DNA of 61,398 nucleotides, counting the filler, from Choristocarpus tenellus KU-1152 (Eukaryota; Protista; Phaeophyceae): NCBI GenBank assembly GCA_964200185.2. It is 9 parts of 9 records of this genome, joined end to end, with 100 filler letters (N's around TTAATTAATTAA, not from the genome) between each part and the next. Parts side by side here need not be neighbours in the genome. Positions count along the whole stretch, not along the records: positions 9,133 to 21,519 come from CAXNAD020001853.1; 8 more parts are not named here. One strand, written 5' to 3'. Position 1 is the stretch's first letter. Every line of letters begins with the position of its first letter. Under the pieces are notes generated by a model, which was given only the letters and a program-made list of their open reading frames with translations, was not told the DNA's origin and did no database searches. Below are positions 8,771-21,519 of the stretch, in pieces. The translations under genes were made by a program, and so were the position numbers.

Positions 8771-9249
8771 CTGTTTGTACATAATATCGTTGCGTAAAAC
8801 GCATTAACGTTCATGGAACTGACAGCGTCTTAGCATTCAATCACCGTGAGGAGCTGATGAGACTTGCTGGGAATCAGAACCAAGCATGTTCCGCACCCCA
8901 TCTAGATACTCCAGTTAACCAAGTGGCAAGCATGTTTTGTGACAAAAAAAAAAAAAATTGAGATGTGGGGCTATCATTGGTTCACTGCAAGAGAATTTTA
9001 TCTCTTGTCTCATTGATTTTACTTTATGGTAANNNNNNNNNNNNNNNNNNNNNNNNNNNNNNNNNNNNNNNNNNNNTTAATTAATTAANNNNNNNNNNNN
9101 NNNNNNNNNNNNNNNNNNNNNNNNNNNNNNNNTCTTGATTTTGGTTCAAGTGGACACCCTGGTGTTGACCCCCCCCCCCCTCCCAGATACTTTGGGTCAT
9201 CATGGTGATTCTGTATTTTTATCTGCTTTTTAGGTGGAGATCTCTGACA

Positions 9250-9375
9250 GAGTGAAATTATCTTAGAGGGTACGAGTTTTGCCCTATTTGTCCATTTGGG
9301 GCTTGACTTCCCACGGGTTTTTGTGACATTTGAATAATTCTGAAATGTTTCAGGGTAGGTCAAATGTCTACGCAC
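9250..9375. mobile_element. MITE family A, truncated
   Basis: One terminus GAGTGAAATTATCTTAGAGGGTA plus the gtccatttggggcttg subterminal motif; other end missing, so the end coordinate is approximate. Confidence 0.7.
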
Positions 9376-9519
9376 ATCAATGCAAGGGTATATGCTACAT
9401 CATAAACGGTAAACAGCACAATATCGAAGCCGTGTGCTCAACCAAAGTAGCAGCATTTCGCATGGCAAACAAGGACAAGACTTGTACAATACTAATATCT
9501 CTAAGAAAAAATGCCTCAC

Positions 9520-9748
9520 CTGGTATTGATCTGGAGTTCTGAATCTTCCTATATCCCACACCAGCAGGTACAAGGCCCATTGTGTCAAAAAAAATTGGTG
9601 CAATCCATAGTAGTCAAACTGCCCAGCAACATCATAGACTCGGATGATCATTGCCTCCACATTTTTCACATGCACTTCTATCCCCACAGTGCTAGGGTCA
9701 GCCCCTTCAGTACACTGCCCTTCACCAGCCAAAATGCTCTTTGTCACA
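9520..9748 (-). CDS. ROCO exon: Roc GTPase switch I / G3 region
   Basis: SVTKSILAGEGQCTEGADPSTVGIEVHVKNVEAMIIRVYDVAGQFDYYGLHQFFLTQWALYLLVWDIGRFRTPDQYQ; tgcag acceptor, gtgagg donor. Confidence 0.9.
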
Positions 9749-12700
9749 CTGCAGTTACCAACATTACACGGTTGCAGTAAGGAATGAAATCACTGAAAAA
9801 ACACATTTCCTCTGCAATTGGTGTCTGCAATAGCGTGTCCACGTTCAGCCAGATTCACAATATACCACTGCGTCACCTGTATATATATCACGCACCTTGT
9901 CTTTCCAGCGCCAGCCACACCCACCAGGACAACTTTGAGTAGATTATGCTCGACTGGATCACAGGCAGTATCTCTCATATCCGTCAAGTAGGCCTCCACT
10001 GCATCAAGGCCAACAGAAACCACAGCTTCAGGGGGCATGACCCACGCATTATCACTCAAAAAACAATATGCCACCCTCTTGAACATCTTGAGCAAATCCA
10101 CAGCCTCGTCCACTGTGCCCCATCCTGGATGTATAATTTTTATGGGGATCATTAACAAAATCGAATCTGAATGTTGCTCTCTGCAATAGCAACTCATGTA
10201 AACTCCTTCCAACTTTCTAGGCTGCAAGCAAGGTATCCACAGTAAAACCAACAGGTAACAAAGGAAATAAGTTAAGCATTATGCAACACATTCATACACT
10301 CAAATGGCTGGCATCAGATTGAAGTGGCCAGTTCATTTGGAAGAATATGAACAATACATGAAACGAAACAACTCATAAGAAAGAGAGGCATGCCATCTCA
10401 GAGGGATTGTTGTTGAATATTGGGGGCCCTTGTGAATGCCTTCTGGTTCATGTGCTTCTAGCAGTCCGGAGGGCAGTTTTGCACACATGTGGACAAACCT
10501 TTATCTCCGTTGAGTCAAAGTATCTTAGAGGGTAGCGCCGCGTCCATTTGGGGGCCAAAATCCAATGTTGCGATTTTGATGAAATTTTGGCTATCGTGTT
10601 TGTTAAGAAGTGTCAATATCTTTGTTCTCGACGCACCTTTTTACAACGTACACATTTTACCTATTCCGAAAATTTTCAGAGTAGGTAATGTCTTAAAATA
10701 CCCTGAGGGAAGTCAAGCCCCAAATGGACAAACAGGGCAAAACTCGTATACCCTCTAAGATACTTTCACTCCGTTTCAACAGACTTCTAGAGGGATTTAG
10801 CTGCATTTCAGGCATGGGATATGGGAATTAAGGCAATAGATTTCAGCAGCCCTCAATACTCAAATGGGCTTAATCTGACATCCGCCCAACATAGGATAGC
10901 TCAGATGTGCAACAACAAATACCTCATTGGAAACACTCACCAACCAGCTGGTTGCTACCCAGGTTCAGATATGTGAGCACTCTCAGCTGACTGAGCTCTT
11001 ACGGAATCGTCCCTGACAGGGAGATTGTTCAGATAGTCATTGTGTCAATCACAGTTACAAACACAAGCACACAAATGAATGAGAGAAAATTGTCAGAAAT
11101 ATGACACAACAGCAAAGCACCTCATCAGAACCTCTCACCTCTCAGCTGGTTACAGGACAGGTCCAGCCGCTCAATGAATTTCAGCTTACAGAGGCCTGAT
11201 GGAATTGACCCTGACAGGTAGATTGTTCAGTAAGTCATCCGCACCAACCACACTTTCAAACACAAGTACACAACAATCTGGCATACAACAACGATACAAC
11301 TCATGAGAAGCACTCACCACTGAACTGGTTGTAAGACAAGTCCAGCCCCTTGAGAGCACACAGCTGGCTGAGCTCCGGCGGAATTGAACCTGACAGGGAT
11401 TTGTTCAGATAGTCATCCCCATCGACAGCAACTACAAATAAATATAACCAACTCCATACTAACATGGTGCAAGAACAAATAACGTTTCATCAGCATCACT
11501 CACCATATAATTGGTTTGTAGAAAGATAGAGCTGCTGAAGGGCACCCAGTTGACCGAGCCTCGACGGAATTGAGCCTGATGGGGAGATTGTTCAGTTAGT
11601 CATCCGCATGAACCACATCTACAAGGTCAAAAACGCAGTAGTATGCCCTACAAGTGAATTGGAGCGTTTCAGAAAAGATGCTACCATAAACACCACATCA
11701 GAAACCCTCACCAATTAGCTTGTTCCTAGAAAGGTGCAGCTGCTGGAGAACTTTCAGTTGGCTGAGTTCTGGCGGAATTGACCCTTATATGGGGGTGCTT
11801 GTTCAGTTAGTCACTCACGCCAACCAATGCTGCAAATACAAAAACACAACAATCAACGCTAGCATTGAAAGGGAGAATAACAATACAAAGATGATACTAC
11901 AACAAAACACCCCATTAGAAACACTCACCTGTTAAGTGGTTACTAGAGAGGTATAGCTGCTGGAGGGCACTCATCTGGCTGAGCCCTGACGGAATTGACC
12001 CTGACAGGAAGTTTCTTCAGTTAGTCATCCATATTGATCACAGCCCCAAACACATGTTCAAAGCAATCTGTGCTACAAATGAAGGGAGAAAATCAACAGG
12101 AGCATAATATGACAACAGAACTCCTTGACAGAAAAACTCACCACATAGCTTGTTCTGAGATAGGTCCAGCTGCTGAAGGGTATTCATTTGGCCCAGATCT
12201 GATGGAATCGATCCTGACAGGGAGAGTGTTCAGATAGTCATCCACATCAACCACAACTGCAAACATAAGAATATAGTATTCTCGGATGCAAGTGGATGGA
12301 AGCAACTCCAAAGAACATCAATGCAATAAAAAGGGAACTATTTTGAAGCACTCACCACTCAGCTGGTTGCTAGACATGTCCAGGTACTGAAGGGATTTCA
12401 GCCGGCCCAGATCTGACGGAATTGACCCTGACATGGAGATTCTTCAGTTAGTTGTTTGCATCAATCTTCAGTTTTAGACATGAGGCCCAGCAATCTGGCC
12501 TACAAATGATCGGTGCAACTCGATAGAAATAAGATTCAACAACAAAGCACCTCATCAGCAATGCTTACCACTTAGCCGGTTATTACTCAGGTTCATCCAC
12601 TTGACACTCAGCTGGCTGAGCTCTGACGGAATCAACCCTGACAAAGAGATATTCCGATTAGTCATACACATCAACTACCGATATCACAAAATGCAACAAA

Positions 12701-15700
12701 ATGGATTACAAATTAATGGGAGCTACTCAGTAGTAACATGAAACAATCACAAATCACCTCTCACCACTCCGTTGGTAATCATGGTGGTAAAGGTTGTTGA
12801 GGGCACTCTGCTGGTTTTTAATAAATGCGAGCAATCCCGCAGAAACATTAAACAACAAAAAATACCTCATCAAAAACACTCACCATTCAGCCGGTTGTTA
12901 GAAAGGTTCAGCTGCTGGAGGGCTCTCAGCCTGCTGATCTCCAATGGAATTGACCCTGGTAGGGAAATTGTTCCACTAGTCGGATTATACACAGCAGGAG
13001 ACAAAAAGAACCGCAAGCCAGCCTAGAATGGAATGGGAGCCATTCAGCTTAAAGACGATACAGCAAGAAATCACCCATCAGAAGCATTTTCCACTTAGCT
13101 TGTTGTCATGGAAGTAGAGCTACTGGAGGGCACTACTCTATTGGCTACAAATTAATAGGGGCAACTCCACAGAAGAGTGATATAACATCAATAGACTTCA
13201 TCTGAAGCACCCACCGCTTAGCTGGTTGCTGGATAGATCCAGCCATATGAGGGCTCTCAGCTGACTGAGATCTGGCGGAATCGACCCTGGCAGAAAGATT
13301 ATTTAGTTTGTCATTCACATGAACCACAGCAATCTGGCACAAAAACATAGCAATCTGAACTACAATCAAATGGAAGACGCTCAACAGATAGATGACATAG
13401 CAATAAAAAGCAGAGATACTCACCACTCAGCTGGTTGTTTCCCAGGTAGAGTTTCTCAAGGTCATTCAGCTGACTGAGCTCTGACGGAATTGATCCTGAC
13501 AGCGAGATTGTGTAGAGTAAAAGTATCTTAGAGGGTACGAAATTTGTCCTGTTTGTCCATTTGGGGCTTGGCTTCCCACTGTTTTTTTTAAATGATATTT
13601 TCCAACTCCAAAATGTTTCAAAGTAAGAAAAATGTGTGTGTTGTTAAATGGTGCGTTCGGAAAAAGGATATTCACACTTCCTAACAAACGTAACAGCCAA
13701 AATTACATCAAAATCGCAACATTGGATTTTGGCCCCCAAATGGACGCAACTCTACCCTCTAAGATACTTTAACTCTTCAGTTAGTTGTTACACATCAATA
13801 CCTGCAAAACAAAAGAACTCAGCACTCCGGGTCTATATGAATGGGAGCAACCCCAAAGAATCATGATACAGCAAGAAAACATCTCATTAATAACACCCAC
13901 CACATAGTTGGTTGTTGCTCAGGTTCAACCATATGAGGACACTCAGCTTACTGAGCTCTGGTGGAATCGACCCTGGCAGGGAGATTGCTCAGTTAGTCAC
14001 CGGTGTCATCAACAGTTAAACAAAGTACACAGCAATCAAGACCACAATTGAATGAGAGTAACTCGACAGAAAGGTGATACAAAAATAAATATTTCGCCAG
14101 AAAACACTCACCGCTTAGCTGGTTGCTAGACAGGCGGAGTCTGCAAAGAGAACTCAGATGGCTGAGCTCTGACGGAATCGACCCTGACAAGGAAATTTTT
14201 CATTAGTCATTCGCATCAACCACAGCAGCAAACATTAACAACACAACAGTCTGGGCTACAAATTAATGAGAAAAACTCCGCAGAAATACAATGCAGCAGC
14301 GGAACACCTAATCAGAAACACTCACCACTCAGTTGGTTGTCATTGAGGTAAAGCTGCTGGAGGGGACTCAGCTGACTGAGCTCTGGCGGAATCAACCCTG
14401 ATAGGGAAATTGTAGATTTGGTCATTAGCTTCTATTACAGCTGCTAACTCAATATCACAGAAACTAAACCACAAAGGAACAGAAGCAACTCCAAAAAAGA
14501 CATGATATGAAAAGCAACAAAATATCTCAGTAGAAACACTTGCCATGTAGCTTGTTCCAAGACAGGTTCAGCTGTTGGAGGGTGTTCAGCTGTCCAAGGT
14601 CCAATGGAATGGATCCTAAGGGGGAAATTGTTTGATTAGTTATCGACACGAATCATAGTTGCAAACACAAAAGCAGAATATTCCTGCCTAAGAGTGCACA
14701 GGAAAGCAACAACATAACAAAAAGCTATGTACAGCAATAACACGCCTATATAAGAAACACTCACCATCTTGCTAGTGTCGCAAACACAAAATGTTTTATA
14801 CATAGTACTGTACATGTTCTGGACTGTTGTACTACAAGATATAACCTATGTTTGAGACTTGAGTGGTGCAAAATGTATGATACGGTTTGCATATATTGGA
14901 CTGGAGTGCTGTAAAACATAGCATTTGTTATTTGAATCTTAGGCTCCACTGTAAGGGGCATAACGTGGTGCTGTCTTCATAGCACACCACATGTTCTGTT
15001 ATAACATAGGGGCATGATACAGTGTTCCTTCATAACATAACACATGTTTTGTCACACAATCAGAACATACTTAAGTAGTGTTGTAAATAGTAGAAATTCG
15101 AATTTGATCGAATCAGGGTCAGTTGAAACCAAAATCCGAGGGGCTGGTCGTTTTGTTATTTGTTGACCCTAAGCATTTAAGAGGGTGAGAGTTTTGCCCC
15201 ATTTGTCCATTCGGGGCTTGGCTTCTCACGGGGTTTTTTACACCCCTTTTCAGTTTTCTGTGTGGATACAGTTACCAAAAATGTATACAACTATGAAAGG
15301 TGTGTATGGACACTTGCTAACAAACACAGTAGCAAAAATTCATCAAGATCGCAACATTGGATTTTTGACCCCAAACGTCTACGGCCCTACTACCCTCATA
15401 AATGCTTTGACTCATTTCGTTCTATTTTGGAGTGTCTAGAATTCAAGAGAAAGCTCACTAACCACTCTAATGAGTCCGTAAGCCATGGTTGCGCCCAGGT
15501 GCTCTGTCGACAGTGGTAAGGGTGAACACCTAAATGAGGCCAACATCAACCCAAATATCAGATATAACCCCATTCCTGTGGAAGATGATGGTAAAGAAGA
15601 CAAAGGATTGAGAAAAGAACGACCAAGGGCCTGATGAAACCCCGGTTGAGCTGACAATTGAGCAGCAGAAACTGAAGTATGTGAAGGGATGGACAACATT

Positions 15701-18700
15701 GTATGTAGCTCATTGCATCAAGGGCTGGCACCTGGTACCTGGCGCATTTTAGAAGTGTGCACGAGGTGAGAATGCCCAATCTAGGTGTCTGCTCAATCCG
15801 TGTGAAGAATGGAGATACTTTTCTAAATCTCAAGATCGAACTAGGAGATTTTATAGTCCACAACCCATGCAAGAAATCAACTCCAGAGGTTCAAGTCTGG
15901 GCACAGCGAAGCTATTTTTGAGTTGGAGGGGGGCGGGAAGAAGATATCCAAATCGGACTTTCAGGAACAAGTGGACAAATGCTATAGTCTGCAGCATCTT
16001 TGAAGTCACCATCCCTAAACCTAAATATAGGTTGAATAAAAATTGAAGCATCTGAGTCGCTTAAGTGATATTGACTGGTTCTAAGAACTGCTTTGACATG
16101 GTGAGGAGTATTCATCAATACTCCAAGGGTGAGATCAGGCAGTCCAGTGGGCTCATATGTTGAAGCAAGTGACCCGAAGTATTTGAGGGGGGTGGGGGAT
16201 CTACACAAGGGTGTCCATTTGGGACAAAACCAGGAAAAGTGCACTTACAATATCCATCCGACGTATGCAACCAAATCCCCCAAAAATTGCGACATGGAAA
16301 AAAGGACCCCCAAATGGACACCCGCCACCCCCCCCAGATACTTTGAGTCAGTTGTGACTACATGTCTGGACCCTGGGACCAAAATCCTGTGCAGGATTTT
16401 GCAGGATGGGCATAGAGTCATTTGTAGGAAGATGGAGTCTGAAGTACTAGGCATCCTCGAGTAGGAGCATGAGGCAAGGGATGAGGGAGAGATCGATACT
16501 GTGGTAGAGTCTATTCTACGCTTATTCACTGTTCATGTTCAGAGGGGGAAGCCTTCCCAGAAGAAAAAGAAGGGGTCTATAAGAGCTTTCCTTACTATTT
16601 ATGGGGGGAGTTGAACTGGTGGTGGTGGGGTGGTGGAACTAACGGTCACAGATTACATGCAGGAGGTATTCATGAAGGTGGAAACCTTCAAATCTGTGGC
16701 AGGCCTCATAATAGTATATGATTGATATTCACTTACAATATACTCTGGATTATTATGTAATGTCATGCACATTACACTATTGCGGCGGTGCAATGATCCA
16801 AAGTATCTTAGAGGGTAGAGCCGCATCCACTTGGGGGACAAAATTCAATGTTGCGATTTTGGCGCAATTTTGGCTATTGTGTTTGTTAGGAAGTGTCAAC
16901 ATCCTTGTTCTGGACACAACGTTTCGTAAATCTCATCAACAAAAATATATGGGAAGCCAAGCACCAAATGGACAAACAGGGCAAAACTTGTACCCTCTAA
17001 GATACTTTCACTCAATATGTACTGCTTTTGTTGGATGGTTAGGATATACCAACATCAATCATGGAGCACATCACCAAATTTTACAACTATTAGAACGGAG
17101 CATCAAGAAATGAGACACTGTGTCACCGCCAACCCTGTACACCATTGGGAGGATTCATTCCCTATGGCTGATGATGGCACCACACGCAGCAGTCAGTGTT
17201 GCTATGTCTTAGGTGATGAGATTCTGGCTGCAACTTTCCCCGTGGGCACCATAATGACCTCTATTGAGCTTTTTGTCCTGACCAGCGGTTTAGAAAAAGT
17301 GGTGGCAGAAAGCCATCATTGGCGGTATCTGAGGGTGTTGGGAGGGTGATTGGGTCTTTCACACCTCCAGAGGGATGTGTGAAATCAAAAGATGCTAGCA
17401 ATGAACGCTGGCCATTCACCCAGGAAGTATGAGTGGAGGAAGAACCAGCGAATGGTGTCACCTTTGACTCACAATGGTGTACTGCTCGGCGAGCATGCAT
17501 GCAGCGCAGATGCTGCAGCAATATACGAATCATATAAGAGTAAAGCATAACATCAAAAGCCAAAAGTCTATAATCCAGAAGTAACCCTGAATCGATTTCG
17601 AAATAGAAGGAAACAGCTGCTTGGAAAGATAAAATTTTAGTTCATTGTGCCTTGCATCCAGTACTGGTTGTGGTAGAGTGAGATTTTTAATTAGCCAGAC
17701 AAATGCTCTCTTCCAAGTGGGTCTTGAACAGGTTCAGTGAACACAGAGACGGTACTCTTTTGCTGAGGGTAATGCATTGTCGTTCCAAAAGAATTGCCAG
17801 TGCTCCTAGGGGAGGAGACCAACCAGCTGGGACCTGGTTGCTTTCGAAGTTCCTGAGAAGCTCTGAACTATGTTGCGGACTGTACATCGACAACCCCTCT
17901 CAAACTCCTGTCCATATATGTATACTTTGGTGCACCTGAGACAGAGGGTGCAGGTGGGGCTGGACCTGCTTTTGCCAGTGGATCAGTGACTAAGATCATT
18001 GAAGGTGGGGGAGTAGTATCACTACTATTGTGCTGGTACAAAAACAAATGTTGTAATCTACTCAGCACCAGAATGCATGTGATATGTTCATCTGCGGCTT
18101 CCATGCTATCAGAGTGAAACTATCTTAGAGGGTATGAATTTTTCCCTGTTTGTCCATTTGTGGGGCTTGTGGCTTCCATGTTTTTTTTAATGACATTTTC
18201 CTACTCCAAAATGTTTCGGAGTAGATAAAATGTATACGTTATGAAAAAGTGTGTCCTAAACATAGATATTGACACTTCCTAACAAACACGACAGCCAAAA
18301 TTTATCAAAATCACAAGATTGTATTTTGACCCCCAAATGGACACGTCTCTACCCTCTAAGATACTTTGGCTCATGACATACTCCAGTATAATACAATACA
18401 CTTGGTGAGCCTTGCAGTTTGGTATTCAGTGGACCTTGGAAAAAATCGAACTGCTAAAGCTCCCATATTCTGTTTTTTGTAACTGACGCCAGAAAACACG
18501 AATCTCAAGTAGTGTGCCAATCTTGCAGGTAAGTGACCAGGCATCAGCAGTAGCCAGCGTCCCTTCTTCAAGGCAAGCACAATTGTTCTCAGCTTTGATA
18601 TCCCCACTAATTCCTGTTGTGTAACAGCAACCTCTGCTCACCTCCCCAAGCTTGTTGTGGTTTGTGCGTTGCCCTATAACTGCTCTCACTCTCTACTACT

Positions 18701-20790
18701 TATTTTTGTGTCAACAAGATTTCTGCTCTTCCATCAGCCTTTTTCAGGATGTAGTTAGTCATAGACAAAATATGCTTGTTCTTTTTAACGTATTAAATTG
18801 AATTTGAGCAGTAAAGTAGAGGGTAGAAATGTTCTGTCTCTGTTTGGGTCATTTTCTGACCCGAAAGACAGAGAATTTGCATCCTTGTCCTATTCGGTGT
18901 GTCCAATTACAATAATGTGGTGCATGCATAGATTGAAGCAGTTTAATTGCCTTGCCAGAAGAATCACATCACACATTCTTAGCATAGCTATTGGCGACCT
19001 ACAGTATCTTAGGGGATGGGGCTTTAGCCCAACCTGTCCATTCAGGGCTTGATGAGGTTTTGTAAAATACCCCAGTTTAATGCCTGTTTTGCAGGTGATT
19101 TTCCTTCAGATTCGGTTCAGGCAGGGGCGTGGAAAAGGAAGATGCATTCAGATGGCGGAAATTGCCCTTAAATCTGACACTTTCATTTACGTAACATGAT
19201 AACCACAACAGGTTCACACAGGCCTCAAATGGACGCCTGATCCCTACCCTCTAGGATGCTATGGATCAGCGTAGCCAAGGACTTTGAGATGCTTTAATCC
19301 ATTCCCTGACACTATCTGAGATGGTGTGAGGAATGAAACCATGAAACGTGCATTGCAGCCAAAACCATTTTGGATTACCATGTCCAAAACAGAATTGAAA
19401 TGCAACTCGAATGCCCCAAAATGAGATTTAGTCACCTCTATCAACTTGTAGAGCTAGCAATACAAGAAATTGCCAGCTATCCGCTGATGTTGTTCACAAA
19501 GTATCATACACTTTCAGACTCCAATTGTGCTAACACTCAAGAAGAAATGAGCAATCTATGATAGTTTGGCAAGATAAAGAGATCTCAGTGATATGGTATT
19601 GCTCCTATAGATGCATTGCTTATGCAACCTCTTATAGTTTGGTAAGAAAACGTTCTTAGTGATATTTCATTGTTAGACTAAAACTCATTGCTCAACCAAT
19701 GCATTTTAATATTTTGGACAGATCAGTGATGATTCATCTCCAAGGCTGTTATAAGAAATTAAACAGCAGTGCAAAGCACATACAAAATGTTCTACAATAT
19801 CAGATCTCAAACCCAAGATATCCACTAGGTATTATAATTTACTGTCAGAAACACTCATTGCTATGAGTACAAATTATTATGGGAATTTAGGTAAATTCTG
19901 GTATTCTTTCACATACACAGTAACCCACGTTAAGTGCGCTGGATGATTTTGTGCATACCTCTTCGTTGCATGACTTGTATTTTGTTCGAGTATATTTTAA
20001 TCTTAAGTATTTGGTTATGTCTGCTTGTCATGAATACGTTGGTTTATTGTGAATACTAAAACTGATGAACTGTTTAGAGCCCTCTTGGGACCTATGAGAG
20101 ATATAGAGCTACTAATTATGCCCACTCACATGCTAGTCTGGCCCCACCCTTCCTCATACTGCTATCCTTGAGGCTAACAGAGCTTGCTTGGTTCATAAAG
20201 ACACCTAATTGTCAAGTGCTGTCTGTACCCCATAATCAGCCTTCCTCAAGAGATTTGAATTATTGATACTTCCTTCGATTTTATCTACATAGACCGTCCT
20301 GTTGGGTGTGTGAAATATACAGGATCTGGTCGCACGTGAGCACTTTTTCACGGAATGCCGATCTTATCCAAAAAAAAAGAGGTAGTATAAGATGAAAATA
20401 TATATTAATCAAGAAGTGTCAAGGAGTTTCTGCGCTGAACTTAAGAGAGGCCTAGATCAACTGTACTTGATACAAATACCTTTTAAACTCAAGCGATGTT
20501 CAGGTCATCTTGAATTCTTAGCTTTCAGTCGAAGGTGTAGTAATGGAGGGAACAGGGCAGTTTCGTGATTTTGAAGGTCTTGTAGGTATATCTCTCGCCT
20601 TCAAGGTTGTTTCCTGCAAGATATACACTGATCACATGTGAGGCTTCATCCACAGTCACACCATGCCTCGAGTCAACTCTAGGGTAGTTTATCTCGCTCA
20701 TCCAACCCTCGCTCTTGATCCGTGTTTTTCCTTTTGTTGATTGAAAAAGATGAAGAAGAACCATTTCTTGTGTGTCCAGACATCCTACTC
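9520..20790 (-). CDS. ROCO-type LRR-GTPase gene (LRR N-cap + LRR exon array + Roc GTPase); 3' part (rest of Roc, COR) lost at the contig gap; possibly pseudogenising
   Basis: Manually spliced: exon 20790-20599 (LRR N-cap), 16 phase-1 LRR exons between 14615 and 10941, exon 10124-9896 (..PPEAVVSVGLDAVEAYL..KVVLVGVAGAGKT, P-loop) and exon 9748-9520 (STVGI switch I, YDVAGQ G3 motif, HQFFLTQWALYLLVWD typical of Roc). Exon phases are compatible throughout. Confidence 0.9.
9896..10124 (-). CDS. ROCO exon: LRR C-cap/linker and Roc P-loop
   Basis: GWGTVDEAVDLLKMFKRVAYCFLSDNAWVMPPEAVVSVGLDAVEAYLTDMRDTACDPVEHNLLKVVLVGVAGAGKT; cag acceptor, gtgcgt donor; phase 1 to 2. Confidence 0.9.
10512..10771. mobile_element. 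MITE family A in ROCO intron
   Basis: TIR GAGTCAAAGTATCTTAGAGGGTA / TACCCTCTAAGATACTTTCACTC; TSD CGTT. Confidence 0.92.
12765..12814 (-). pseudogene. 5'-truncated, decayed LRR pseudo-exon
   Basis: Reads QQSALNNLYHHDYQRS|gtgag. The donor is kept but the acceptor and GSIP part are deleted. Confidence 0.7.
13092..13134 (-). pseudogene. Decayed LRR pseudo-exon
   Basis: Reads SALQ*LYFHDNKLS with an in-frame TAG, donor mutated to GAAAAT and 5' part deleted. Confidence 0.75.
13515..13775. mobile_element. MITE family A inserted within the LRR cassette array
   Basis: Same TIRs; splits the conserved intron motif gagattgttcagttag (flanks tgta / ttca). Confidence 0.92.
15165..15413. mobile_element. 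MITE family A-related, diverged
   Basis: Degenerate TIRs GACCCTAAGCATTTAAGAGGGT / ACCCTCATAAATGCTTTGACTC; interior homologous to family A. Confidence 0.75.
16171..16349. mobile_element. MITE family B (about 180 bp, poly-G TIR)
   Basis: GACCCGAAGTATTTGAGGGGGG..CCCCCCCAGATACTTTGAGTC; flanks agt / agt. Confidence 0.88.
16795..17013. mobile_element. MITE family A with internal deletion
   Basis: Family A TIRs, 219 bp; flanks aat / aat. Confidence 0.85.
18112..18372. mobile_element. MITE family A
   Basis: Family A TIRs; flanks atca / atga. Confidence 0.88.
18996..19267. mobile_element. MITE family C (about 270 bp)
   Basis: Termini GACCTACAGTATCTTAGGGG / CCCTCTAGGATGCTATGGATC; interior homologous to 29745-30012. 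Confidence 0.75.
20599..20790 (-). CDS. ROCO N-terminal LRR-capping exon
   Basis: Translates GVGCLDTQEMVLLHLFQSTKGKTRIKSEGWMSEINYPRVDSRHGVTVDEASHVISVYLAGNNLE, resembling an LRR N-cap (LF.ST.G..W....W....W.GV.V....V..L.L..NNL.G). CAG acceptor; ends in phase 1 at a GC donor (GCGAG). Confidence 0.75.
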
Positions 20791-21456
20791 CTGGAGAAAT
20801 AAAAACATTTTGAAGACAAGGATAGCAAATATTGAAACAGGTTTAGAGTACTCTAGCAATAGCAATATCGTGCGTATATCACAGCTAACATGACAACGTT
20901 GAGCACTGAAGAATCCAACTGGATAAAACACTTCGATAGAGAGATGAGCGTTAAGCACTTTCTTTCTTTGCGTTCATATGCTCCATGACCCTGTGCAATC
21001 GTGTCTCGGAGATGGCGTGCCCATCTCTTCTCCTGTTGTGCCGAACTTGCAGAGGATAAGCACAAAAAAGACACAAGTCATGAGTAGCGCCGTAAGCGCC
21101 TATCTATCAACTCTCTCGAGATAGGAGGAGAGTTTGGTGGGACTAACGATCCTGCCTTTGTACGTGCCAACTTGTAACTCATGGTAAACTTACCTCCAAT
21201 CATACGAGTTTTGGAAAGTGTTTTAGTTCTTAGACCGGTTATTGTCCACGACAGAGCTTCAGTTAGCTTCTAGTTTCAAGCCTTTGTTTAGAGATCAACG
21301 CAGCCGTTTGCATATTCTCGGATCAACTTTAGTCTGAACATCTTTGCCATTTCTAAGTAATGGTGATAAAGATCAGGAGTTGTTCTTGATACATACATAA
21401 ATACAGTTACTTTTGAAAGGTGAAGTAGAACCACTAATAATACATATAAACATTAT

Positions 21457-21519
21457 TGTGAATCGTGTGATTCTGTGGCGGCGTGGTTCACTCAGGCAAG
21501 GGTGGCGAAAAGAATCACC
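21457..21519. repeat. Terminus of an unassembled repeat (inverted copy at 48821-48882)
   Basis: TGTGAATCGTGTGATTCTGTGGCGGCGTGGTTCACTCAGGCAAGGGTGGCGAA is the near-exact reverse complement of 48821-48882; both abut gaps. Confidence 0.85.

Follow-up and report, generated by a model that had tools for sequence, protein, structure and literature searches.

Brown algae have few known candidate immune receptors, ROCO genes among them, and the somatic diversification of these genes has been a provocative question since 2012. In the type I LRR-ROCO genes of Ectocarpus (for example Esi0032_0115 and Esi0032_0138; PMC3341825), an LRRNT-like N-terminal cap precedes a tandem series of LRRs that have one 72-nt exon apiece (GxxPxxLxxxxxLxxLxLxxNxLx), and a linker and Roc follow; LRR exons inactivated by nonsense changes or truncation lie inside the array, and variable residues occupy the x positions of the concave face. 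Signs of exon shuffling in the brown-algal LRR-ROCO groups 1/2, namely recent exchange within or between loci or LRR exons that lie in introns but on the non-coding strand, are known from 19 Ectocarpus loci and are frequent, not obligatory (Zambounis 2012/Teng 2024). Among the brown-algal ROCOs surveyed more broadly (PMC11378527), nucleotides 3-71 of the 72-nt exon encode 23 residues (what is called 'phase 2' there is the standard phase 1), the domain order is LRR-ROC, variable sites fall around positions 14, 16 and 19, and S. japonica SJ02233, for example, has 16 LRR exons. Pfam COR was detected in only 18 of 111 of these proteins, and splice variants were reported for Ec-06_001640 and Ec-08_002960 in this survey of four brown-algal species (Teng et al. 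2024, PMC11378527). The architecture has been published previously, and so have the two mechanisms put forward for its diversification: somatic recombination by Zambounis 2012, and alternative splicing in the manner of Dscam by Teng 2024. The initial annotation of the locus described here, which regarded the diversification mechanism as an open question, was right in part, but PMC11378527 reports alternative splicing of such LRR exons in Ectocarpus, and the proposal of somatic recombination dates from 2012 (PMC3341825).

The locus is located in Choristocarpus tenellus KU-1152, on the 12.4-kb contig CAXNAD020001853.1, which occupies positions 9,133-21,519 of the window (the whole stretch of DNA analyzed, 61,398 nucleotides including filler). 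On the minus strand, the contig encodes an N-cap exon, 16 exons with one LRR each, and two Roc GTPase exons, in this order. With the Ectocarpus type I genes it shares the tandem 72-nt exons, the linker, the inactivated LRR exons and the location of the variable residues, with a putative LRRNT-like cap in front; with the other brown-algal ROCOs it shares the register of the exons, the order of domains, a similar number of LRR exons and the variable sites. In contrast to the Ectocarpus genes, its non-coding strand is free of LRR exons and it shows no signal of recent recombination within or between loci; the identity of its Roc exon to the best brown-algal matches is only about 45-57%, and COR is not visible on the contig. 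The assignment to the brown-algal type of ROCO LRR-GTPases, made in the initial annotation, holds: the closest relatives of the Roc exons are proteins of Ectocarpus, Nemacystus and Scytosiphon, and the LRR exons match the published 'type I LRR exon'. The locus is a real yet ordinary member of the described family of brown-algal LRR-Roc GTPases, very probably a germline-encoded gene (or a very young pseudogene) of the LRR-Roc(-COR) kind that is truncated by the end of the contig.

The LRR array spans positions 14615-10941 and, as initially annotated, comprises 16 symmetric phase-1 exons, which all measure 72 nt except for one of 69 nt (12637-12569); both the junctions and a profile of the repeat unit bear this out. 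Each exon consists of 2 nt, 22-23 codons and 1 nt, with introns in phase 1 on both sides, and encodes a single LRR with the consensus SIPSELSQLxxLQxLxLSxNQLx. All 16 exons are preceded by an AG acceptor and 15 are followed by a GT donor, the exception being E01 with a GC donor (gcaagt). On the minus strand lie E01 (14544..14615, SIPLDLGQLNTLQQLNLSWNKLH), E02 (14326..14397, LIPPELSQLSPLQQLYLNDNQLS), E03 (14112..14183, SIPSELSHLSSLCRLRLSSNQLS), E04 (13901..13972, SIPPELSKLSVLIWLNLSNNQLC), E05 (13424..13495, SIPSELSQLNDLEKLYLGNNQLS), E06 (13215..13286, SIPPDLSQLRALIWLDLSSNQLS), E07 (12884..12955, SIPLEISRLRALQQLNLSNNRLN), E09 (12356..12427, SIPSDLGRLKSLQYLDMSSNQLS), E10 (12142..12213, SIPSDLGQMNTLQQLDLSQNKLC), E11 (11929..12000, SIPSGLSQMSALQQLYLSSNHLT), E12 (11712..11783, SIPPELSQLKVLQQLHLSRNKLI; weaker acceptor, atataag), E13 (11504..11575, SIPSRLGQLGALQQLYLSTNQLY), E14 (11318..11389, SIPPELSQLCALKGLDLSYNQFS) and E15 (11139..11210, SIPSGLCKLKFIERLDLSCNQLR), all of 72 nt. 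E08 (12569..12637, minus strand, LIPSELSQLSVKWMNLSNNRLS) is the 69-nt exon, with one codon deleted, and E16 (10941..11012, minus strand, 72 nt) reads TIP*ELSQLRVLTYLNLGSNQLV, with splice sites and LRR consensus intact. With E values of 5e-30 to 4e-40 for the copies in the unit-profile search, and 15 copies spaced by about 213 nt in a repeat search, the array is far above chance; Tandem Repeats Finder reported no repeats in it because the units are less than 70% identical.

Where free of inserts, the introns of the array are 107-146 nt long. The E04-E05 intron reaches 405 nt because a MITE (13514..13775) was inserted there, and another MITE copy (10511..10760) lies between E16 and the first Roc exon. 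Two introns harbor half-units that were overlooked in the initial annotation. The one in the E06-E07 intron (13065..13134, minus strand; profile positions 70-140, E 1.6e-10) consists of the 3' half of an LRR exon and its 5' intron flank, lacks an acceptor, and is a dead cassette; the one in the E07-E08 intron (12746..12814, minus strand; profile positions 63-131, E 8e-06) retains only the 3' half.

Upstream of the array, the N-cap exon (20599..20790, minus strand; 192 nt, that is, 2 nt, 63 codons and 1 nt, phase 1 on both sides) encodes VGCLDTQEMVLLHLFQSTKG...RHGVTVDEASHVISVYLAGNNLE(G), contains an in-frame ATG at 20764 as a candidate start codon, and ends with a GC donor (G|GCGAGA). Homology searches were performed exon by exon. 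The N-cap exon is 37-46% identical to eight paralogous N-cap exons that belong to LRR loci elsewhere in this genome, on separate contigs, and all nine are closed alike by an NNLxG|GT (or GC) junction; the motif recurs at the N-terminus of Nemacystus g1813.t1. A search of this exon against Pfam for an LRRNT_2-like cap, which measures about 45 residues in this family, produced no match at E<=1. The exon is separated from E01 by an intron of 5,983 nt (14616..20598, minus strand), enlarged by MITE copies, in which no LRR unit and no recognizable domain were found; ORFs in this intron and 5' of the N-cap exon matched no Pfam family above threshold. This MITE-filled stretch of 6 kb corrects the initial annotation, which described a 3.7-kb array between the N-cap and the Roc exons.

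The repeat unit, which the initial annotation did not recognize as such, is the entire segment of ~212 nt comprising an exon and an intron, and the units align end to end. Pairwise identity of the units is 56-69%, with adjacent units (0.625) no closer than non-adjacent ones (0.627). Among pairs of LRR exons, pS is 0.52 and pN 0.27, pN is below pS in 99% of the pairs, and dS is about 0.93; third codon positions are 57% identical, comparable to the middle of the introns (50-60%), and the final ~31 intron nucleotides, with the branch-point-like TGACTAAC, the pyrimidine tract and AG, are 70-75% identical. The units are under purifying selection; they are old and equally diverged, without recent duplication or exchange. 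In Nemacystus decipiens g1813.t1, by contrast, the LRRs are nearly identical to one another (…ALGALSNLT…).

These properties bear on the possibility that the array is remodeled in somatic cells by recombination or gene conversion between cassettes, in the manner of VLR or V(D)J loci. Reshuffled LRR exons, together with intronic ones on the opposite strand, prompted the proposal of such a mechanism for the ROCO genes of Ectocarpus (PMC3341825), and the two intronic half-units do indicate that cassettes can be lost. The lamprey and hagfish VLR loci resemble the present one in that LRR modules are the unit of diversity of a candidate immune receptor. In the germline, a VLR gene lacks part of its sequence, which copy-choice then supplies from cassettes that flank it in both orientations. 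The array studied here, in contrast, is complete, colinear and spliceable in the germline and contains introns, and it is not an incomplete gene with donor cassettes beside it. Its 16 full units and two half-units share a single orientation: the unit profile, run over the whole contig, found no plus-strand unit and no unit outside the array. Nor do the units show tracts of recent exchange. A search of the genome at the DNA level with eight of the units produced matches on this contig only, a result that gives a lower bound on the number of similar arrays, and the intron flanks at other type I LRR loci differ from those found here.

Contigs from two genomic DNA samples run colinearly across the locus and show 0 differences in a comparison made at the contig level, which does not reach rare somatic variants; the joints listed in the two samples sit only at MITE copies, and on their shorter side no more than 25 letters match. 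According to Teng et al. (PMC11378527), neither somatic recombinants nor recombinases have been reported. We consider somatic recombination at this locus extremely improbable.

A tree of single LRR exons points in the same direction, with the window exons clustering by locus: 3 changes were required compared to 12.6 with shuffled labels, and none of 500 shuffles gave a number as low. The tree comprises 72 columns and is poorly resolved, with the other loci represented by about 3 kb each; a single clade of window exons was not rejected (AU p 0.435). The initial annotation had depicted the locus as a library of cassettes in active diversification. This picture finds no support in the age and equal divergence of the units, the lack of opposite-strand cassettes and of copies detected on other contigs by the DNA search, the locus-wise clustering of exons and the identity of the two samples. 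No result obtained here shows active diversification of the array, and the DNA evidence lends that hypothesis no support. An old array with a single orientation, a history within one locus and the same sequence in two DNA samples is not what the 'highly dynamic shuffling' picture predicts.

The initial annotation further missed an in-frame TAA in E16 (11001-10999), which is present, without differences, in the contigs from both DNA runs. Given this stop, reading all exons yields a truncated, LRR-only product. The exon retains all the consensus residues, so the nonsense change is recent. Either E16 is a nonsense cassette that splicing has to leave out, or its stop marks the locus as a young pseudogene. 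The latter, a dead ROCO copy with a decaying LRR array, would also accommodate the two truncated units, the intronic MITEs and the 6-kb first intron; in Ectocarpus, the family shows a high rate of birth and death with many pseudogenes, and the Choristocarpus genome itself holds several ROCO copies laden with stops. However, no stop interrupts the reading frame of the N-cap exon, of either Roc exon or of the remaining 15 LRR exons, the splice sites are intact, the P-loop and the DxxGQ motif are canonical, and the exons bear the mark of past purifying selection. The stop itself, being recent, would be harmless if the exon is skipped because the frame survives skipping. We therefore regard a pseudogene as possible but doubtful.

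If E16 is skipped in a functional gene, the question arises whether other cassettes are skipped as well, so that regulated omission of subsets of the phase-1 exons, with E16 optional, generates many receptor isoforms from one gene. The N-cap exon and all 16 LRR exons are symmetric in phase 1, so the frame is kept whichever exon is skipped; reaching Roc requires skipping of E16; and two splice sites, the GC donor of E01 and the acceptor of E12, are weaker than the rest. In Ectocarpus, two ROCO genes have annotated isoforms that differ in their sets of LRR exons (PMC11378527). Against these points, the strong and nearly uniform splice signals across the units fit constitutive inclusion. The locus was found in two sequencing runs, both of genomic DNA, and in none of the RNA runs searched.

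The comparison with the variable exon clusters of arthropod Dscam1 likewise extends only to tandem duplicated exons of equal length and phase. In Dscam1, one exon per cluster is chosen in a mutually exclusive manner, through pairing of docking and selector RNA elements. The repeats of the present locus are additive and must stack serially, and no conserved intron structure of the docking/selector type was detected: for within-intron pairing, the RNAalifold consensus of 12 introns reached -0.05 kcal/mol, and its 5 pairs were trivial. On balance, combinatorial splicing of the Dscam kind appears unlikely. Less likely still is the specific scenario in which the 16 same-phase cassettes are used combinatorially and E16 serves as a splice-controlled switch, its skipping giving the full-length LRR-Roc protein and its inclusion a truncated LRR-only or NMD-targeted product. 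If true, it would endow a brown alga with a tunable receptor repertoire from a single locus.

Under the reading we prefer, that of an ordinary germline-encoded gene, the LRR domain would have arisen long ago by tandem duplication of the ~212-nt unit, that is, the 72-nt 'type I' LRR exon together with ~140 nt of intron. The LRR exons are predicted to be read in series because all units keep intron phase 1 and nearly identical strong splice signals. The product, a putative receptor, would be a horseshoe of about 17 LRRs (the N-cap, 15-16 cassettes and the C-cap) joined to a Roc GTPase whose P-loop and DxxGQ motifs are canonical. The repeats vary at the x positions of LxxLxLxxN. This variation probably stems from germline evolution by duplication, point mutation and cassette death, with no demonstrable diversifier based on somatic change or splicing. 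The locus poses neither a new question nor a new mechanism; it contributes one clean and compact example, with 16 cassettes and short introns, which can serve for calibration and, being easy to cover by amplicons, for tests.

The Roc exons flank the array on the side opposite to the N-cap exon, as initially annotated. Roc exon 1 (about 10124-9896, minus strand) encodes a C-terminal capping LRR, a linker (…CFLSDNAWVMPPEAVVSVGLDAVEAYL…) and the P-loop (KVVLVGVAGAGKT); its acceptor is tentatively placed at 10124, and its donor is AG|GT at 9896/9895, in phase 2. Roc exon 2 (9520..9748, minus strand), which reads (S)VTKSILAGEGQ…STVGIEVH…RVYDVAGQFDYYGLHQFFLT…, includes the Thr of switch I as well as DxxGQ, the G3 motif, and ends with CAG|gtgagg in phase 0; on its own, this exon matches Pfam Roc PF08477 with 30.2 bits, above the 27-bit cut-off. 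Together, the two exons carry the P-loop GVAGAGKT, the switch I Thr and DVAGQ, whereas G4 and G5 lie beyond the contig end. The beginning of the next intron (9133..9519, minus strand), with a MITE at 9249-9372, occupies the 387 nt between Roc exon 2 and the contig end, where the gene leaves the contig before COR; the rest of Roc, the presumed COR and the C-terminus are off the contig. Since the whole contig is the piece included in the window, COR is not visible here. When a paralogous Roc-COR sequence was used as the query for the continuation, 13 contigs of another, divergent ROCO subfamily were retrieved, and the remainder of the gene was not among them.

The pattern NPWxxPP…GAGKTS…YDVAGQ..YYGLHQFFLT is common to the locus and the brown-algal LRR-Roc proteins. 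Nemacystus decipiens g1813.t1 (EukProt EP00752_P001882, 1082 aa) is laid out like the locus, with the N-cap first, followed by the LRR array, the NPWxFPP linker and finally Roc; it also has the motifs GAGKTS, YDVAGQ and YYGLHQFFLT and is 39-46% identical over the Roc exons; Roc exon 1 aligns with its residues 367-417 and with paralogues from the Choristocarpus genome. The closest Logan relatives, L056 and L057, are on contigs that are short or have few LRR exons. In L056, an intron is located at the matching point, after the GKT of Roc exon 1.

Positions 9133-21519 of the window correspond to one entire contig, C1853 (12,387 bp), of a 164-Mb assembly comprising 27,310 contigs. Reading and scripted extraction place on its minus strand, from 14615 to 10941, an array of 16 exons (E01, the most upstream, to E16), each encoding one LRR and no more, with the consensus SIPSELSQLxxLQxLxLSxNQLx. 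The exons are 72 nt long in 15 of the 16 cases and 69 nt in the remaining one (12637-12569). In each, the register is 2 nt, 22-23 codons and 1 nt, so that every intron splits a Gly codon after its first base, in standard phase 1 (the identical register is termed "phase 2" by Teng et al., PMC11378527). All 16 acceptors are AG, and the donors are GT except for the GC of E01. The repeating element is the full exon-plus-intron unit of about 212 nt rather than the exon by itself, the introns being mutually alignable end to end. The 16 one-LRR exons reported in the initial annotation were confirmed by extraction, by a repeat search that yielded 15 copies spaced by about 213 nt, and by a unit profile that retrieved all copies (E 5e-30 to 4e-40). 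In this profile search of the contig, every unit lies on the same strand, with no LRR units on the plus strand and none outside the array on either strand.

The array also contains damaged units. E16 (11012-10941, minus strand), the unit nearest the Roc exons, carries an in-frame TAA at 11001-10999, despite which it retains all LRR consensus residues and both splice sites. The unit profile search also detected, within over-long introns, two truncated units (13134-13065 and 12814-12746), each consisting of the 3' half of an exon and the intron flank after it; a third long intron is accounted for by a MITE (short inserted repeat element) at 13514-13775. The initial description held for the exons themselves but overlooked the E16 stop, the two truncated units and the exon-plus-intron nature of the repeat. 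The gene is either functional, with E16 skipped, or a young pseudogene.

Upstream, an N-cap exon (20790-20599, minus strand, 192 nt, phase 1-1), which ends in …YLAGNNLE(G) followed by a GC donor, is separated from the array by a 5,983-nt intron crowded with MITE copies. It gave no Pfam hit; the N-terminus of Nemacystus g1813.t1 matches it, and eight further contigs of this genome carry N-cap exons with 37-46% identity to it, which share the NNLxG|GT end junction, one of them with a GC donor. Two junctions of the gene have GC-AG introns (E01 donor, 14543-14538; N-cap donor, 20598-20593), as does a paralogous N-cap junction (L023, on C6323), and GC donors seem to be recurrent in the gene family.

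Downstream of the array, Roc exon 1 (about 10124-9896, minus strand; the acceptor position, about 10124, is inferred) encodes a capping LRR, a linker (…FLSDNAWVMPPEAVVSVGLDAVEAYL…) and the P-loop KVVLVGVAGAGKT, and Roc exon 2 (9748-9520, minus strand) encodes (S)VTKSILAG…STVGIEVH…YDVAGQFDYYGLHQFFLT. The second exon alone clears the Pfam Roc cut-off (30.2 bits vs 27), and the GKT|S exon junction rebuilds the family pattern GAGKTS, with an intron at the matching site, after GKT, in a contig from a related alga. The contig ends after Roc exon 2, so the visible gene stops before G4/G5, COR and the C-terminus. Among 1.84 billion representatives, with the exons searched one at a time, the best Roc matches are 45-57% identical, and those named are all brown-algal (Ectocarpus sp. 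6, Ectocarpus sp. 12, Nemacystus decipiens g1813.t1, which is LRR-Roc by Pfam, and Scytosiphon promiscuus). As far as the contig reaches (it ends before COR), assignment to the brown-algal LRR-ROCO family is correct. L056, a related brown-algal ROCO locus (Logan SRR23272291 contig, 4,930 bp), shares the intron after the P-loop GKT and the linker DNPWxMPPE; it has only one LRR exon within about 1.5 kb upstream, so that cassette density is strongly unequal among relatives.

The initial annotation proposed a receptor cassette diversified by Dscam-like alternative splicing or VLR-like recombination between cassettes. A currently shuffling library does not fit the divergence pattern, which is that of old, constrained duplicates. 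Pairwise unit identity is 56-69%, and neighbouring units are not closer than distant ones (0.625 vs 0.627). Exon pairs show pS 0.52 and pN 0.27, with pN<pS in 99% of pairs (dS ~0.93, dN ~0.33), and third codon positions, at 57% identity, have diverged as far as mid-intron columns, at 50-60%. Identity is 70-75% over the last ~31 nt of the intron, which contain a branch-point-like TGACTAACTGAAC, a pyrimidine tract and AG, and ~77% over the first ~10 nt; RNAalifold found no conserved structure in 12 clean introns. The divergence values are the mark of old tandem duplications later kept under coding and splice-signal constraint. The variable LRR residues (positions 10, 11, 13, 14, 16, 19 and 23) overlap concave-face sites reported as positively selected (PMC11378527).

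Exchange of cassettes across loci was likewise not borne out. A DNA search of the genome with eight units matched no contig except C1853. With a 23-residue LRR profile, over 20 further contigs proved to carry type I LRR exons, spaced 360-1300 nt at the loci examined; every exon of the C1853 array scores 36-50 bits, above all but two of the exons on other contigs (those two at most 40). In a maximum likelihood tree of 42 exons, built on 72 columns only and weakly resolved, C1853 exons cluster (3 label changes vs 12.6 when shuffled; 0 of 500 shuffles as low), and the AU test does not reject a single C1853 clade (p 0.435). Intron flanks at the other loci examined are locus- or subfamily-specific (for example, gttggtgtttggcag in C2037; ctcttttcctcacag in C6580 and C3396). 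Together, the clustering and the distinct flanks indicate that exon relationships follow loci, an outcome that the initial annotation itself had named as refuting.

Nor do cassettes differ between samples at the contig level. Only two public runs contain the stretch, from two samples of one study that are perhaps not independent individuals. Against 9400-15000, contigs from both are colinear with the genome through exons and introns alike, without a single differing letter or gap, which identifies both runs as genomic DNA; no RNA run contains the locus. The two samples agree in the number of cassettes, in their order and in the E16 stop, on the scale of contigs, where rare somatic variants could escape detection. 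All 15 joints listed (of 49) in the run contigs fall at MITE copies, about 10511-10776 and 13511-13709, and their shorter side matches by at most 25 letters. Overall, nothing measurable supports the proposed diversifying system, and at the DNA level the balance of evidence is tilted against recombination.

Both mechanisms are already in print. Zambounis et al. 2012 (PMC3341825) described the same architecture in Ectocarpus, with a cap, as many as 18 LRRs, each on a 72-nt "type I" exon, a linker and Roc-COR (in the present gene, any COR would lie beyond the contig); they also reported LRR exons lying inactivated in introns, and put forward targeted somatic recombination as a mechanism. The architecture was extended to four brown algae by Teng et al. 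2024 (PMC11378527), who described its occurrence there, including a Saccharina gene with 16 LRR exons, as in the C1853 gene, reported Ectocarpus splice variants differing in LRR sets, drew the Dscam analogy, and pointed out that neither somatic recombinants nor recombinases are known. The present locus is a convenient, compact one on which to test questions on brown-algal LRR-ROCO genes.

A second, larger ROCO subfamily of this genome (C3396, C6580, C11170, C945, C1068, C8892, C20879, C5366, C1789, C12091, C1841, C21713 and C908) encodes Roc-COR in one long exon (open frame ~400 aa) and has a degenerate G3 motif (DFGAH vs DxxGQ). Several copies contain internal stops (12 in C1789), which suggests that these may be pseudogenes and that the family turns over.

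A low-copy repeat in the 6-kb intron (17600-18050), with no Pfam domain, is 67-82% identical to stretches on C18395, C8709, C22773 and C15955. The MITE-like element (~260 bp; terminal inverted repeats …AGTATCTTAGAGGGTA … TACCCTCTAAGATACT…) is present on C1853 in at least six copies, all intronic and in both orientations (9249-9372, 10511-10760, 13514-13775, 15164-15410, 16794-17013 and 18111-18373), and degenerate copies lie around 16160-16350 and 18990-19260. Searching the genome for it yielded 4,075 first-look candidates, and contig word depth, summed across the copies, reached ~450,000.
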